Shown here one piece after another: positions 6,044-46,500 of a DNA stretch of 64,000 bases (positions within the stretch are counted from its first letter, which is position 1; each line of letters begins with the position of its first letter). Origin of the DNA: Oikopleura dioica (taxonomy: Eukaryota; Animalia; Chordata). The notes below the pieces were generated by a model. That model saw nothing but the letters and a program-made list of their open reading frames with translations. It made no database searches and had not been told where the DNA came from. A program made the translations under genes and the position numbers. Location: contig OU015568.1 of NCBI GenBank assembly GCA_907165135.1, forward strand, positions 11,284,001-11,348,000, written 5' to 3'.

Positions 6044-7311
6044 CTTAAAAACGCCGGGTTATAACAAGTATGGTATGATGATATGAACTGTCATTCTAGT
6101 GCCGAGTACTCGGTGACGTTTCTGTCATTTTTGTAAGTTTGGCCACTCTGGCATTAGCTAGGTAGCGCTTGTCAAAACAATTTTCGCAAAATCAAATATT
6201 TCGTCCGGACGCATGTTTTTGTATTTTCGCGAAAAATGCAAAACCCTCGCAGAGGAAAATCGTAAATACGCCCGGCCGAAAATATCATAATATAAGTTTA
6301 GAAAGGGAGCCCGCGTAAACATATAGTAGCAGTGCTACTTTGTTTATATCCGGTGGAAGAATTGTTGCGCCTAAAATAATTGCCAAGGATTAGCGTCGAC
6401 TGGAAGGCGGCTAATTGCTATGAGCACTGTCAGTATTAACGAATTAGCAAGCGCAATTTGTGCCACCTCGTGTCACAAGTGTTAAATTTCAATTTCTAGT
6501 GAAAAACGAGCCTTTTTCATACTAAAAAAGTGGAAATAAAAGGAAGAGTGTTTAAAACTTTCCAAATAGGAGAATTTGTAATGCTCCGTTTTCTCGATCA
6601 TTTTAAAATTATAAACGAAAAATACTTCTTCTTCTTATTTGGGAAAACTTACTTGGATATCCAGGAATTCGATGATGCATAGACAGCGGATCCATTGGAT
6701 TTGAAAGGTTGGAAATCATTCCATAAGGAGATTTTAAGTAGGACATTGAGTTGCTGCCTAAAAATACGAATTAGACGAAATAGAGTGAGACATATTTTTA
6801 AGAAGAATCGAACACTTATTTTGACGGAACGATTCTGCGGTTATGGAATTGACTTGGACCTCGGAAGCGGATTACTTCACCCTAAGCTGCAAAAAGAGGG
6901 GACACGCTTGTGGCTTGGGTATGTTCCCGCGAAGGAGTACAATGTCTGGCAAAATTGAAAAAACTCCAGGAGAGAAAAATAACTTCTTATCTTCTTGCGC
7001 GTGCGTTATCAGTAGAGGGTCGGATATTTACGGGCGCATCCGGAGTACCGTGGGAAATTTTCGCTAATTGGCCTTGCATCTTTTTTCCATTCAAGAGCCC
7101 TTTCTAGCTTTTTTTCACGTTTGGAATAGAGGGTTGCTCCTTTTTACTTGTGTGAATTTATTCACTTAGTGGTTTCATTCTGATTTTCACGCATTGGGCG
7201 GTCGGGGTACCCATTACTCTAATTGCTTTTCTACCGGAGCTATTTAACCAAGGAAATCTCCAGGAAAGAAAGAAGTTACAGACCGTACAGTAGGCATTAT
7301 GGCGCCCGTAA

Positions 7312-40700: not shown

Positions 40701-41316
40701 CACCATATGAGTAGACAGAACCTGAAATACAAGAATGACAAGCAACCTGTTAATAGGAACGGACTCAACTGCACGCTTTCGTTTTTTTTTAAATCGACAT
40801 CTACTTGAGCCCTAAAAAGTGCCATTCAACAGCTGGCTAATCCGCTGAATACGCGCATTCGTAAGAGCTTCAGTTTGAACGACATGAAAGCATTTCTACG
40901 GGACACGAAGCGCTCAGACGCGATGATCCTGGATTCGCGCGACCCTGAGCCCGTGGCTTACACGAGCGAGAATCTCTTACGGCCGCTCATTACGCAGCCA
41001 GCAACAGTAGGTGATAATCGAAATTTGATGCACAGATGCTCTAATTGAAACAATTTAGAAACGCCGTCAATCTCGCCAAACTCGACGTCAAGACAGGGCT
41101 CTCAGACCCATGGAACAGCTCCTCTGACGGAGGAAGAGTCTACCAGGTAATGATTGTGACTATAAGACAGTAGATGGATGTTGAAAATCTAGCCTGGCGT
41201 CCAAAATGTGGCTTACACCCTCCATTCTCCGTTCAAATCCCATCAACTTCATTCGACTCGGTTCCGTGACAAGTCAAATGTCCGTCAAACAGACAGACGA
41301 CCCTGTAATTATTTAA
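37768..41316 (+). CDS. gpr156: GPR156-like orphan class C GPCR (GABA-B-related, no Venus flytrap domain)
   Basis: Phase-consistent exons are 37768-37870, 38052-38148, 38654-38772, 39378-39550, 39665-39811, 39850-40026, 40070-40429, 40470 onward and three tail exons. Motifs NDVLCK, LLCGSLLAHSS, LSVGCSLVFG..WK, VDV..TLWSSTDPFRC, FCSVHY..W..KGVL and FHFIPKI match GPR156/GABA-B TMs as I recall them. The N-terminus is short and the C-tail is long and S/Q-rich. Confidence 0.8.
39626..39648. repeat. (ATCA)n microsatellite in a gpr156 intron
   Basis: About 5.75 perfect ATCA units. Confidence 0.9.
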
Positions 41317-41537
41317 CTAACATATTTTTGACTGAACTAGAATGTGATAATTTCTCGTCACTTTAATATTTTCATTCCAAATAAACACACTTTGTAACAG
41401 CATTTATACTTCAAAGTCAGGCGCCTTGTTTCTCACCTTCTTCATTTGCAGGCTAAAAGAATTCTTTATTTTAAAAAAGAGAATTTTGATGAACCTCGGA
41501 TTCAATGGGAGTCACTTTGTTCGTCATCTTTGAGTTC

Positions 41538-43206
41538 TTATTCCTCCGAATTACCAGAGCGTGTTCTAGGCCTTTTCCACTTGTAAGAACTACTACTGTC
41601 TGAGCGCGGATTTCCGAGTCTTAGATAGGTTTTTTCCGGATTTTGGACAATGAATATTCTCATTGCAACGAAATAAACCTTGGCCATGCAAAACTGGATG
41701 ATCGGATTGCAAATCAACGAGATGCGGGCAATGACAGAGGGAAATGCGACGAACGCGTAACGGGATGAGTAGACATCATCGTCGACGGCAGTTTTCGAGA
41801 TCATGATTGACAAGATGTAGCAGACATATGGCATCTTAAAGAATTATAAATTTTCAGAAATACTTACAAGACTTTTACCCATCCTATTAGCCACGCAGCT
41901 ACCATTGCGACGGTCATTTTCCATAGAAGAATGTCGTGATCCCGAGTCGGGCAACTTCGCTCAGACGGTGACTGGAAATAACATTTTTTAATCTACTTTT
42001 TGACGTCAAACTTGAAAAATTTTCCAGACAAGGATACATTATAATTCTGAGTGGGATACCTGAACGCGTATAAAACTAAGCGTAGTTCCAAATAAGTAAA
42101 TCATGACGATCAACGGCGTAATATAGACGATGATCAGGAAACAAATGGTAAACTTTGCACCATTTCCACCACTAAATACGTATGGGAGTAAATTATGCGC
42201 AAGTAGTCTCGTGATTCTGATGAATTGTCAATGACGACACTCATTCTTGAAGGACTAATTTTTACCTATACCAATTTGGCGCACAAGATGTTCCAATGCC
42301 TTCAAGTGCGTATTGATTCCATCCAACAAGCGGAAGCATGCACCAAATTCCGCTCCAGATCCAACAACAACCAGATGAAATCATCGATTGTTTGATATCA
42401 AAGTTAGCTCCTGCAAGCGGATTGCAGATCACAAGATATCGCTCAACCAGCATCAAAAGAAGACTAAAATATTTCAAAAGAAAGACTCAAAAAAGTCACC
42501 TAAGAAGTCTTGTTGAGCCACAGAAGAAAGTGATGAATCCTTCGATTTTGCAAGCATTCATGCCAAAGTAAAAATATCCCATTGCATTTGAAATCATTGT
42601 CATGAAGACGCCTAGAGCCGTTGCCACCAAGTCACAGGAAGCGAGATTAAGGGAGAGCATTCGAATCGGGTTTTTAAGACCGTCATATTTTCCTAAAGTC
42701 GTATTTCTAAAGCTGTCTTTATGCATGTATCTTACCAATAACGGCTAGAAGCATACAGTTGAGAAAAAGCGAAAGCATGAAAACAACAAGAAAAATGAAA
42801 GAAATAGAAGCGTAGGCACCACGACTAACTTTTAGGAAGTTTAAAAATAATTTGTCTTTTGTACTCCTCTATGTCTCCAAAACTCCTTTCCTTGAGAGAC
42901 ATGATATACAGTGGTCGTATTAAGATCGTACCAGTATTGCTGGCAAGGTGGCTCTGCTGGTGGCGGAGGCATTGTCGTAACGACGAGTTCTGTGGTCATT
43001 TCTGCCGTTGTTACCCATGCTTCCGTTGTTTCCGTTATATTATTGTTGGTCGTAGTATTCACGATACTTTCCAGAACAGTTGCAATCGTGGCGACAACAT
43101 CATTCTCGTAGTTTCGTTTGGCCTTACTGTCGATGTAATTACTGTCATTTGCAGGTGCTAATGTCTCGTTCATGGTCGCGTTCATATTTATCAAAGATTC
43201 TTTCAT
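41538..43206 (-). CDS. opsin: Ciliary-type opsin (Ciona opsin1-like) lacking the retinal-binding lysine
   Basis: Seven exons encode a Thr-rich N-terminus, TM1 FLNCML, TM2 LNLASCDL, ACKIEGFITFF (C110, E113), VERYLVICNPL, GWNQYALEGIGTSCAPNW (E181, C187), TM5 PLIVM, TM6 GWMPY and TM7 FPSVIARISLICNPII. The C-terminal end is uncertain. Confidence 0.9.
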
Positions 43207-43522: not shown

Positions 43523-46500
43523 TCAATGATTTTCGGGATCAGCCTTGTGATTACTTTGGGGTTTGGAAATCGAGTTTGTATAAGTTGATAGAAGGCATGT
43601 TCTTTCCCAGATAAACTCTAGTAATCTATAAAAAGAATTTATTTGTTTGAATTAAATCGAATGAAATAAGCCGTCGGAAAAATGTACCACATTTCTTTTT
43701 GCATAACATGTCCTTCACTTCTTGTAAAACTTTCATGCGTCATTTGGATGTTCATGTTTCGAGCAACAGTCTTTGCAAAATCGGCATCGGTGTAGTAAAA
43801 TGGCCGCGAAAAAGGAATTCTTATTTTTGCCTTATGTGAAGGGTTTTTATCGTCCACAAGACTACTTTTCATAAGATAAATTTGATCTGCATCATCTTTG
43901 CGATCCATTATCATTTGATGGAGATAAACTTCTCCATCTGAATTTTTCTGAAATATGAATTGAGTAATGCAATGTGAGAGAATCATTGATTATTTTCCTA
44001 AAACAACTATCCATAGATCATTATTTACCTGAGCACAACAAACAGATATCGGACAAACGATGTCATCACAGGTCAGATCGACTTGAAAATTAATTACAAA
44101 ACAAAAAAGATGTAAAGGAATCTCTTACCTTCTTTCATGATAAGAGACGTTTTTGGAGCCCGATATACCAGATTTTGGTAAAGAATTTGGTCGGCCTCTC
44201 TTAGTAAAATTTTCCAACCTTCAGGTTCAAAAAATGTAGGATTAACAATCCTTTTAAGAACTCGCTCTGCCATCGCCATTTGATTGGTGGTGTCTACATC
44301 GCCGACAGCTCCATATTGACTCCATTCATGCAAACTTCTTGGTGTTAGTCTCATTGTTAAACAACTAATGAGATCTTCTATACTAAGGGTGTATTTATAG
44401 AGCTTGAGATTGAGCTCACTCATAAATTCCTTGAGCACAGAGTAGAACAAATCGCATGTTGATATTGGTACACAAAGATTTGTGTTTCGTTGAACAAGCA
44501 CACTTTGAGTTACGTTGGAAAACATAGACTCACGAGTAATTGTTATATTCATTCTAATCATCTGATTGTTGATAGTACAAAGAGTGTTGTTCGGTTTGAT
44601 TCGTATTTTTTCAAGGTCAAATTTTATAGGTCGACTTGCTAACAACATTTTTGTCATTAATTTTTCTGCTACAGTATTCGAGTATGTAAGAGATCCATTG
44701 AATAAGTCTTCTAGAATTTTGAAAACCCCAGTAAGTCCAGCTTGCTTTATGCACTTCTTTATATATTTTCGATCAAAATTTTGCTGATCACGCTCCTCAT
44801 TTTCAGTTTCCAAAGAATAAAACATCAAGACCCAGGAAGTTTCCCATTCGCAGCAGCAAAAGACAATAAAACGCAGCAGGTTTGTTGGTATTTCATAATC
44901 ATCTTGGGAAAAATTTTCGACAAAGCCTGCCGTTCCTGCTTCTAAAAACACAAATGAAACAAATTGACGAGGACGTTTATCCAAGGTTTTGAAGCTAAAA
45001 GAAGTTCTATTTTTTTGAAATTAAAGAAAATAAGATCATTCATTCTATCAAAGACATTCACATAAAAATTCAACGATTGTATTATCGAACTGTACCTAAA
45101 AAATCAGGAAACCAGAATTTTGTTCCAGATCGCACAAGACCATCCTGACAGTAACGTTCGTATACAGAAGGAATCTCAAGATGCTCAGGAAAGCAAGCTG
45201 ATAAAAAGTTAACAAATTTGACTGATTTTTTCTCGTTTATTTGTTAACTACCGGTTTCGGATAAAATCCTTCATCAGGCTTAACAGACAATAAACAATTA
45301 TTCCGATGTAAAGTAAGTTACCGTGAGGCGGCAAAAAGCACGACTGAGTTAGCAGTGTAAAAAGCGAAAACAACAAAGATCTAATCGTAACAGAAACGGC
45401 AAAAGGGGCGCCAAGAATGGATTGATGTATGCCCCTTTTACAGAAAATTGACACTTTTGCTCTGAATTTGACGGTTTAAGATCAAATAAACGAAGAAAAA
45501 TGCCAATGGTCAACTAGAGATATAATTTGACTGATATTTTATATAAAATATGATAACTTTACTGAAAGACCAAAATCGCATAATCTTACATCACTTAAAA
45601 TAAGGTTTTTTGAAAAATTTGAAAATCAAGAAAAATATTACCTCAAATCTCTTTGAATGAGAATGTTACTTGGTTTAAGGTCAGAGTATCGAATCTTCAA
45701 TTCTTCAAGATTATTCAATCCGGTGAGGACAGAGAAAAGAATTGTTTGTCGAGATTTCATCGATAGGTGTCGGCTTGCCTTTAGAAGTTCAGCAAAATTA
45801 TCATCATACAAGGGCATGATTGTAATTGAGCCTAATGGATCTGACTGAATTTCATCATCTTTATGAAAGAACCTTATACAACAAAGAATCGGCACTATTC
45901 CCGGCATGTCCACTTTATTTCGTGTAAAAGAATAACTTAGTTCTACCATAGGATAAGAAAATAACCAAGAATCAAACGGTTGTACTCTCACTGCATAGTA
46001 TTTTCCATCAATTTTTTCCTTAAAAACAACTGCTTCGCCTCCGAATGATATAATGTTTCCAAACTCAAGTTCTCTTCCAACTGTGTAAGGTTTTAATGTT
46101 TTTACAAAAAGAATATTTTTATATAATAAGTAAGTTTTTAATGAAATAAAACCGAAGATTTCAAAATTTTAGATTGAATTCTAATATGCTTCAAAATTTT
46201 TCTTGGAGAATTTAATTTAAACTGCAAAAATTTATATTGTATTTATTGTCATCTGTTAGTTCGGTGAAAATTAGACTACCAAGTCGTGAGTGTTTTCCGT
46301 AAAATCACACTATCACGATCAATTTGTTCTTTGCTAATGTCTGGAGATAAGTTCAACGCGGTCAAACTGCAAAAAAACGAAAATAATGAAGTGTTTTTAA
46401 GAAAAAAACCTCACAATAATAAGACCATTATACAGCATTCTCTGTAAAACAATCATTTGTTTGTTGTTTAAATCGACAACAAACGGCCCTCTTTTCTTCT

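Follow-up and report, generated by a model that had tools for sequence, protein, structure and literature searches.

A larvacean ciliary opsin with arginine in place of the retinal-binding lysine, conserved under strong purifying selection

Lys296 is conserved to such a degree that it serves to define opsins, and Lys-less sequences are as a rule set aside as errors or pseudogenes (PMC9368030). The Lys-less clades covered in a survey of such sequences are the gluopsins, some astropsins and the nemopsins, all of them chromopsin-type and none chordate; Ciona is included in the text and supplements of that survey, which hold no Oikopleura sequences (PMC9368030). Here we describe an opsin gene of the larvacean Oikopleura dioica that encodes Arg at the Lys296 site. 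The gene lies on the minus strand, at 43206-41417, of a 64-kb stretch of genomic DNA (GenBank assembly GCA_907165135.1, contig OU015568.1, positions 11,284,001 to 11,348,000), which is referred to as the window, and its product is a class A G-protein-coupled receptor (GPCR) encoded by exons separated by short introns. An initial annotation of the window had proposed a chordate ciliary opsin (c-opsin) with this replacement, and the claims made there were followed up by database searches, comparison with related loci and phylogenetic analysis.

Among the described systems, the nemopsins of nematodes (e.g. C. elegans sro-1) resemble the larvacean protein in a clade-fixed change of Lys296 to Arg, in hosts that have no canonical opsin vision and in a proposed non-photic, chemosensory role; Arg-bearing nemopsins are expressed in chemosensory cells (PMC9368030). 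They are chromopsins (peropsin/RGR-related) with an intact NPxxY (PMC9368030), whereas the larvacean protein is a c-opsin in which the NPxxY tyrosine is lost. The gluopsins of arthropods, mainly lepidopteran, and the Glu296 astropsins of sea urchins (PMC9368030) are likewise genuine opsin clades without the retinal lysine, and the gluopsin NPxxY is also derived; both differ from the larvacean protein in carrying Glu at 296, in being chromopsins and in occurring in other phyla. The same substitution as in the larvacean has been engineered as K296R in vertebrate RHO and in Drosophila Rh1. In vertebrate rhodopsin it abolished chromophore binding, produced no degeneration and was tolerated in rods (PMC12697683), and Drosophila Rh1 with the K-to-R change still responds to aristolochic acid as a chemosensor (cited in PMC9368030). 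Such mutants were made in the laboratory by a point change in a photopigment that is otherwise intact, whereas the larvacean change is natural, ancient and accompanied by changes to the activation microswitches and the retinal pocket. Light-independent roles of opsins are documented in chemo-, thermo- and mechanosensation, as scramblases and in trafficking (PMC8892948, PMC9368030). As for the host, a review describes Oikopleura as devoid of any visual organ and as having lost retinoid signalling (PMC10963430).

The proteins with which the larvacean opsin forms a common clade (support 99/98) are the ascidian opsins of Ci-opsin1 type (Ciona intestinalis 'opsin' P0205 and those of Clavelina, Styela and C. 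savignyi) and, from vertebrates, VA opsin, parapinopsin and pinopsin. Identity to the Ci-opsin1/VA/pinopsin group is 26-31% over 300-370 aligned residues, and the common features comprise an extracellular loop 2 (ECL2) of the form EG(I/L)GTSCAPNW(Y/F), E113, E181, the disulfide, ERY, W265/Y268, Arg314 and the NKVxP tail. The difference is that all 26 clade members compared have Lys296, Tyr223 and Tyr306, whereas these sites are Arg, Phe and Gln or Glu in the larvacean protein. Its own features are a longer branch, the substitutions T118F, E122S, C211V, F261W, A269V, F293V, F294I and Y301C, a Thr/Asn-rich N-terminus of ~100 residues and 14 residues beyond the VxPx motif, which is normally terminal.

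The Arg codon is CGC at 41726-41724, read on the minus strand as GCC CGC ATC, within a transmembrane helix 7 (TM7) of sequence FPSVIARISLICNPIIQ (also read as YAFVAFPSVIARISLICNPIIQ); coordinates and alignment agree with the position given in the initial annotation. CGC differs from AAA and AAG at all three positions. In a MAFFT alignment the Arg column holds Lys in 42 of 52 long opsins, the remainder being truncated or frameshifted entries, and in a separate alignment column 296 was Lys in 26/26 chordate c-opsins. The spacing around the Arg is rhodopsin-like, with Pro291 at -5 and Asn302 at +6. When a larvacean TM7 profile was searched against the PDB, the sole match was a weak one (E 0.46) to the bovine rhodopsin TM7 peptide 1FDF, ungapped and with R placed on K296, and the TM7 exon alone found no match there at E<=10. 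Because searches with TM7 only are weak, the alignment to Lys296 rests mainly on the full-length alignments. Since no retinylidene Schiff base can form with a guanidinium group, established opsin chemistry rules out a conventional covalent photopigment; the protein lacks the Lys296 (7.43) of retinylidene photopigments and was not classed as one.

A search of 5.8 billion proteins with exon 7 recovered nine unspliced fragments of the gene (ENA, JGI and Logan assemblies), all with Arg. From the contigs of these fragments, together with relatives found through exon 4, 18 loci were obtained. They were grouped as follows.

Lineage A: the window and a TARA contig (L002), at 96% nucleotide identity.
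Lineage B: L006, with L012 loosely placed beside it, at 94-98% protein identity to the window in exon 7.
Lineage C: L003, L004 and L007-L010, at ~70-76% nucleotide identity over the region and 94% protein identity in exon 7.
Lineage D: L001, L005 and L011, at 69% to the window in exon 7.
Lineage E: L015-L018, related to D.
Lineage F: L013, more divergent.
Lineage G: L014, in which TM7 is not covered.

Arg was found in 14/14 related loci that were checked across TM7 (L001-L012, L013 and L015), which derive from marine metagenomes and sequencing runs, represent at least six diverged larvacean lineages and are 65-100% identical in exon 7; every orthologue covering TM7 thus carries the residue seen in the window. 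The codon is always CGC in these loci while flanking codons vary and synonymous sites are otherwise saturated, and this invariance could reflect codon bias or a constraint at the nucleotide level. Comparison of the window with lineage C over exons 4-9 (237 codons) gave 139 nucleotide and 16 amino-acid differences, corresponding to a ratio of non-synonymous to synonymous rates (omega) of 0.02 with a synonymous divergence (dS) of 1.5-2.3. Values of 0.02-0.04 were obtained for the window against L006, L012 and L003, and of 0.02 for L001 against L015 in exon 7, so that omega is nowhere near 1. Against the TARA contig (300 codons) there were 20 synonymous and 0 non-synonymous differences. Where exon 3 overlaps with lineage C, protein identity is 100% (52 residues of L008 and 39 residues of L010). 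The Phe at position 223 and a residue other than Tyr at position 306 are as fixed across the lineages as the Arg, and the most conserved parts of the protein include its cytoplasmic face, namely ERY, intracellular loop 2 (ICL2), helix 8 and a 25-residue stretch that follows helix 8.

The presence of Arg in all lineages, together with the low omega, places the K-to-R change before the lineages split and implies that it was kept by strong purifying selection. As judged from these alignments, the comparisons show that the gene is selectively maintained and that Lys296 became Arg before the sampled larvacean lineages diverged and has stayed so since. All ascidian and vertebrate relatives keep Lys, from which it follows that the change took place in the larvacean line once this had separated from the sampled ascidians. 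The Arg in 14 contigs, the omega values and the purely synonymous differences also exclude a sequencing error, which had been called unlikely on the strength of the codon, as well as a private null allele and a pseudogene.

The opsin identity of the protein was examined by similarity searches and trees. For exon 3 the best PDB matches, with E values between 5e-8 and 6e-6, were to cone opsins and rhodopsin, the alpha2A adrenergic receptor following at 3e-4, and for exon 4 they were to long- and medium-wavelength (LW/MW) cone opsins (E 7e-12) and rhodopsin (2e-8), the best non-opsin being CB1 (4e-3); in these searches all opsins outranked other GPCRs by 4-9 orders of magnitude. Pfam 7tm_1 was found on exon pieces at E 1.5e-6 (exon 3) and 4e-7, just under the whole-protein cutoff because these are pieces, and orthologous open reading frames (ORFs) carry PF00001. 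The full spliced model is 29-34% identical to pinopsin, parapinopsin and VA opsins, with E about 1e-50. A phmmer search of 1.84 billion representative proteins with exon 4 returned 284 matches at E<=1e-3, made up of unspliced metagenomic fragments of the larvacean gene and other opsins; each long match that was named or aligned is an opsin. A profile search, headed by the Clavelina opsin, gave returns dominated by vertebrate and ascidian opsins, and a 202-residue ORF of lineage E recovered only unspliced fragments when used as the query. Among the database matches, which comprise unspliced metagenomic fragments and other opsins, there was no annotated full-length protein for this gene.

Two IQ-TREE runs (LG+C20+F+G4) were made with opsins only, that is without a non-opsin GPCR outgroup and without a nemopsin sequence. 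In both the larvacean protein was nested in the starred clade, with support of 100/97 and 99/98. Members of that clade, by their database names, are LWS, SWS2, OPSV, pinopsin, parapinopsin, VA and lamprey P-opsins together with the ascidian opsins (Ciona, Clavelina and Styela), while cnidarian c-like opsins and proteins named melanopsin or peropsin lie on the opposite side of each tree. The larvacean branch has 2.3 substitutions per site against a median of 0.3-0.9, and its exact position within the clade is unreliable for that reason. In the free tree the protein was basal in the clade, and monophyly with the ascidian opsins was marginally better when forced, the approximately unbiased test not rejecting it (p-AU 0.52). 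The trees thus place the protein inside the opsins, and show it, by its position in them, to be a larvacean member of the chordate ciliary-opsin clade, in keeping with the initial annotation; ECL2 and the tail motif point to the Ci-opsin1 type. Nemopsins have Arg296 in common with it, and the protein groups with chordate c-opsins, on a starred branch apart from the peropsin-named sequences. Going by that placement, the Arg296 of larvaceans and that of nemopsins is independent convergence. Its Arg at 296 and its position in the chordate c-opsin clade likewise set the protein apart from gluopsins.

The corrected gene model has nine exons, and the spliced product has ~440 residues. The seven exons of the initial annotation, with a frame that ran to 41538, did not hold, the coding sequence ending at 41417. 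The parts of the model are given below, all on the minus strand.

Exon 1, 42891..43206: start codon at 43206-43204; Thr/Asn-rich N-terminus with several N-x-S/T sites; ends ...YHVSQ + G.
Intron 1, 42829..42890: 62 nucleotides (nt), non-canonical GA-AG.
Exon 2, 42736..42828: TM1 (SRGAYASISFIFLVVFMLSLFLNCMLLAVI), carrying Asn1.50.
Exon 3, 42500..42692: TM2 to TM3, with D83, C110 and the counterion E113 (codon 42543-42541).
Exon 4, 42266..42463: end of TM3 (ERY), TM4 and ECL2, with E181, S186 and C187 (EGIGTSCAPNWY).
Exon 5, 42060..42171: TM5, with Phe at 5.58/223 (codon 42092-42090).
Exon 6, 41879..41971: intracellular loop 3 (ICL3) and TM6 to Trp265, with Asp at 6.30/247.
Exon 7, 41679..41834: end of TM6 (W-MPY), extracellular loop 3 (ECL3) and TM7, with the Arg codon CGC at 41726-41724 and NPIIQ, the Gln codon being 41696-41694; the 3' end is good to within a few bases.
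Intron 7, 41620..41678: taken as coding in the initial annotation; bounded by candidate splice sites.
Exon 8, 41495..41619: helix 8 and tail, (D)SEIRAQTVVVLTSGKGLEHALVIRRNKNSKMTNKVTPIESE, with Arg314 and NKVTPI (VxPx-type) at 41515-41504.
Intron 8, 41494-41453: GT-AG.
Exon 9, 41417..41452: PANEEGEKQGA, then the stop codon TGA at 41419-41417.

The 3' end of exon 1 was placed by homology to CERYWYDLNETNVSHVSQVSRGAYASISF, an intron-less sequence of lineage E (L015:4817-5425). The ORF in that stretch reads ...YWYDLNETNVSHVSQVSRGAYASISF, and the window matches HVSQVSRGAYASISF only through the GA-AG junction; this junction alone yields HVSQ-V-SRGAYASISF, identical to the intron-less sequences of L015 and L013. 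Introns of the GA-AG class are common in O. dioica. Intron 1 in a canonical GT-AG form, as in a first model, was rejected, since it would remove the conserved residues WYDLNTTTVYHVSQ.

Between ATGGCCAAG/GT (41679/41678) and CTAAG/AC (41620/41619), the sequences of lineages B and C differ in length by amounts not divisible by three and include stop codons, while the flanks are conserved. The last 46 residues of the initial annotation (VYFVAMRIF...SGNSEE), with a stop at 41538, were accordingly discarded as read-through of an intron that is open by chance in this strain; in the near-identical TARA contig the frame of this tail is already shifted. The conserved frame of exon 8 reads SEIRAQTVVVLTSGKGLEHALVIRRNKNSKMTNKVTPIESE (41617-41495), with differences that are nearly all synonymous. 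Exon 8 is present in lineages B, C, D, E and F, and its frame is fixed by conservation amid many synonymous changes. Exon 9 is kept in lineages A, B and C (9-11/11 residues), and the intron before it keeps its GAG/GT and TTTAG/CC boundaries, its interior having diverged with indels. The ends of intron 7 look like a canonical GT and AG and are conserved, but canonical GT...AG excision leads to TRKSALRQ-stop, and the conserved frame of exon 8 requires one more base. The same oddity of frame recurs in lineages D and E (L001:713-959; L015 about 6538-6753). An unusual splice site (GT-AA, TT/TA-AG, CC/GG-AG or GC-AG variants) is conceivable here, as is some other restoration of the frame. The acceptor CAG/ACA (41599), which would make intron 7 canonical, was rejected, since the SEIRAQ upstream of it evolves as coding sequence and its AG is CAA in L012. 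Lineage F (L013) has no intron 7, and the sequence there is contiguous, ELIM-DDDIRAQ, with 12 residues from Asn/Ser302 to Arg314 as in rhodopsin. Correct annotation of the gene therefore requires two non-canonical or unusual introns to be read.

With exon 8 in place, helix 8 reads IRAQTVVVL against FRNCMVTTL in bovine rhodopsin, exon 8 supplying Arg314, and the tail NKVTPI matches the C-termini NKVAPA, NKVGPA and NKVTPA of Ciona, Styela, Clavelina and Xenopus pinopsin. We take the NKVxP (VxPx) tail motif to be the ciliary-targeting signal of vertebrate opsins. Turnover of introns among the larvacean lineages is heavy: intron 6 is absent in L001 and L015, introns 1, 2 and 4 are absent in L015, and L013 has extra introns within ECL2 (between LE and GIGTSC) and within TM7 (in the codon of residue 302). 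The Thr-rich N-terminal region at 42932-43130 (-), TTEAW.TTAEMTTELVVTT, differs in repeat length from that of the near-identical TARA contig (L002:1-300).

Residues were assigned bovine numbers from HMMER alignments to 1F88, in which residue i of exon 3 is i+63 and residue i of exon 4 is i+127. D83, C110, E113, E134-R135-Y136, W161, E181, S186 and C187 are present, as are W265 and Y268; the retention of E113, E181, the C110-C187 pair, ERY and W265 described in the initial annotation is thus confirmed. E113 is E50 of exon 3 and E181 is E54 of exon 4, and both are kept in lineages C, E and F. As expected of a class A receptor, D2.50, the disulfide cysteines, (E/D)RY and the CWxP-type W6.48/P6.50 are all found. 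Two positions noted earlier as changed proved to be so: position 223 (5.58) is Phe where 26/26 chordate c-opsins have Tyr, the Phe being kept in lineages C, E and F, and position 306 (7.53) is Gln (NPIIQ) where 26/26 comparators have Tyr, with Gln in the O. dioica-like lineages and Glu in lineages D, E and F. The canonical class A activation microswitches Tyr5.58 and NPxxY Tyr7.53 are thus missing, and Asn302 (7.49) is Ser in lineages E and F. On the cytoplasmic side, the partners of the ionic lock, ERY and the Asp at 6.30, are kept. The ECL2, EGIGTSCAPNWY, is a close match to that of Ciona, EGLGTSCAPNWF, and is of the opsin1 type, as had been stated.

Within the retinal pocket, E113, G114, G121, L125, W167, Y178, E181, S186, C187, A188, P189, W191, Y192, W265, Y268, P291 and A295 are kept. 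Changes relative to a strong clade consensus are V117T, (S/T/A)118F, (I/V)122S, F208L, C211V and F212Y, to which F261W, A269V, (F/Y)293V, F294I, T299L and Y301C are added. At bovine positions 111 (TM3), 202 (TM5) and ~278 (ECL3) the protein has lysines that are unusual in this clade, and no lysine was found at the pocket positions 90, 94, 117, 186 and 293. A search of the 64-kb window by tblastn, using our own model and six ascidian and vertebrate opsins, found no second TM7-like exon and no paralogue; this is a genomic check, and within it the alternative Lys-bearing exon raised in the initial annotation did not appear. A weak tblastn match at 45411-45572 was discarded as stop-ridden low-complexity sequence.

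The explanation that in our judgement probably fits these results best is a selected, nine-exon, Lys-less c-opsin with a non-photic receptor role. Several observations weigh against it. Canonical splicing gives no exon 7/8 junction in the conserved frame, and the link between TM7 and helix 8 is uncertain by 2-4 residues, the candidate products being ...QFCMAK-D-SEIRAQ, ...QFCM-D-SEIRAQ and ...QF-Y-SEIRAQ. With both activation tyrosines lost and Asn7.49 replaced by Ser in two lineages, G-protein activation of the ordinary kind is disfavoured. The ECL2 lid as a whole and a large part of the pocket are still opsin-like (E113, G114, G121, W167, Y178, E181, S186, P189, W191, W265 and Y268), and a retinoid-like ligand could still be bound. 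As for transcripts, none of the indexed words occurred in 18 small runs that carry an RNA label for the species, no RNA run in the index contained the stretch, a scan of JGI contigs for spliced forms (e7/e8 and e6/e7 junctions) gave no match, and all database fragments of the gene are genomic. Four further RNA runs (X4-X6 bulk, X1 single-cell), from another lineage (<90% alike), held no reads of opsin exons bar four doubtful ones in the low-complexity exon 1. The same four runs cover the neighbouring exon at 41184-41351 (+), with differences spaced at multiples of three bases; these differences indicate that the runs come from a different lineage of the species, so that they say nothing reliable on opsin expression.

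The most adverse interpretation of these points would be a decaying or non-functional copy, whether as an artefact, a strain-private null allele or a pseudogene. The RNA runs examined, which give no support for transcription, the very long branch in the opsin tree and a TM7 exon that on its own matches nothing in the PDB could all be cited for it, but the same Arg codon occurs in 14 independent contigs of different samples and lineages, omega is 0.02-0.04 with saturated dS, none of the 20 differences in the closest contig is non-synonymous, and frames and splice-site flanks are conserved while introns diverge. We consider decay scarcely credible, and as far as the sequence data go it is already refuted. 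A second reading is that the protein is still a light sensor, with the chromophore held non-covalently or through a Schiff base to a relocated lysine (111, 202 or ~278). In its favour, E113 and E181 are retained as counterions, as are the ECL2 lid, W265 and Y268, and two unusual lysines, K111 (V/Q/E/Y in 26 chordate c-opsins) and K202 (S/T/L), are shared by lineages E and F; in rhodopsin, moreover, experiments can shift the active-site lysine to other pocket positions. However, no lysine stands at the pocket positions 90, 94, 117, 186 and 293 that were checked, and positions 111, 202 and 278 are presumably extracellular helix ends that do not face the chromophore. The bulky Phe118 and Trp261 also intrude into the polyene/ionone site, the host has neither a photoreceptor organ nor retinoid signalling (PMC10963430), and K296R rhodopsin binds no chromophore (PMC12697683). 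Retention of light sensing is, in view of this, quite improbable.

A stronger competitor is an opsin that does not signal and has a structural, trafficking or lipid-scramblase role in sensory cilia, locked inactive by an Arg296-Glu113 pair and the tyrosine losses. Y5.58F and Y7.53Q/E are found in every lineage and N7.49S in two, the retained Arg296, Glu113, ERY and Asp6.30 would favour a permanent 'dark-like' state, the VxPx-type tail motif is conserved, and chromophore-independent roles of opsins as scramblases, in trafficking and in mechanosensory cilia have been reviewed (PMC8892948). The cytoplasmic face is nevertheless among the most conserved parts of the protein, which a pure scaffold should not need, and the extracellular lid and the pocket are constrained as well; we regard this reading as unlikely. 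The two sets of observations pull in opposite directions on signalling itself: the conserved ERY, ICL2, helix 8 and the following 25 residues favour a signalling receptor, and the two missing activation tyrosines favour one that does not signal or does so atypically.

Returning to the Lys-less receptor with a non-photic role, its parts can be held with different degrees of confidence. That it is a functional protein without covalent retinal is very likely, and there are good grounds to expect that its role is light-independent; that it signals as a GPCR is close to an even question, on which we lean slightly to doubt. In such a receptor, the conserved disulfide, N-glycosylation sites, helix 8 and NKVxP tail motif would give a folded, cilium-targeted protein. 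Arg296 would pair with Glu113 and thereby mimic the lock between protonated Schiff base and Glu113, holding the apo-receptor in a defined resting state, and the former retinal pocket would be partly remodelled through T118F, F261W, A269V, F293V and F294I. The input would be non-photic, either a diffusible ligand or a mechanical or thermal cue, and the output would pass through the conserved face of ERY, Asp6.30 and helix 8, the microswitches being changed at Tyr5.58 (to Phe) and at Tyr7.53 (to Gln or Glu). We tentatively suggest, at somewhat less than even confidence, that larvaceans may have turned a c-opsin of Ci-opsin1/vertebrate type into a retinal-free GPCR of sensory cilia, gated by ligand, temperature or force, with Arg296 as the permanent partner of Glu113.

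The surroundings of the gene were also inspected. The exon at 41184-41351 (+) is the last exon of a convergent neighbour gene and its end lies ~60-100 nt away from the stop codon of the opsin. An ORF piece at 45638-45991 (-), upstream of the opsin gene, matches Pfam Pkinase (E 2.7e-7), and ORFs at 43639-43986 and 44094-44984 (-) have no Pfam match. In lineage E the opsin locus is flanked by a nucleotide-sugar transporter gene (Nuc_sug_transp, L015:1886-2747 (-)) and a RASSF-like gene with an RA domain (L015:8769-9320 (-)). Neither of these was found beside the opsin of the window, and local gene order looks unconserved.

Lys-less opsins are known elsewhere, as gluopsins and Arg-bearing nemopsins, and the initial annotation had known of no chordate c-opsin case; none proved to be described in the searchable literature, where no description of an Oikopleura or larvacean opsin was found either (subscription-only papers lay outside the search). 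On present comparisons the larvacean protein would represent an independent Arg-type loss of the retinal lysine, and it is the first that we can find within the chordate ciliary-opsin clade. This clade contains the vertebrate rod and cone pigments, and fixation of the change in deeply diverged larvacean lineages, at an omega of ~0.02, is hard to explain as decay. If the receptor reading is correct, the protein would be the first natural, clade-wide and selected Lys-less opsin in the lineage that gave rise to vertebrate visual pigments. The gene offers a natural experiment on what an opsin does without covalent retinal, on whether an Arg296-Glu113 pair replaces the lock between Schiff base and counterion, and on how the loss of the eye and of the retinoid pathway in a chordate relates to the fate of its opsins. 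O. dioica is a laboratory model, so that these questions are directly testable, and larvaceans may thus provide a tractable chordate model for light-independent opsin functions.

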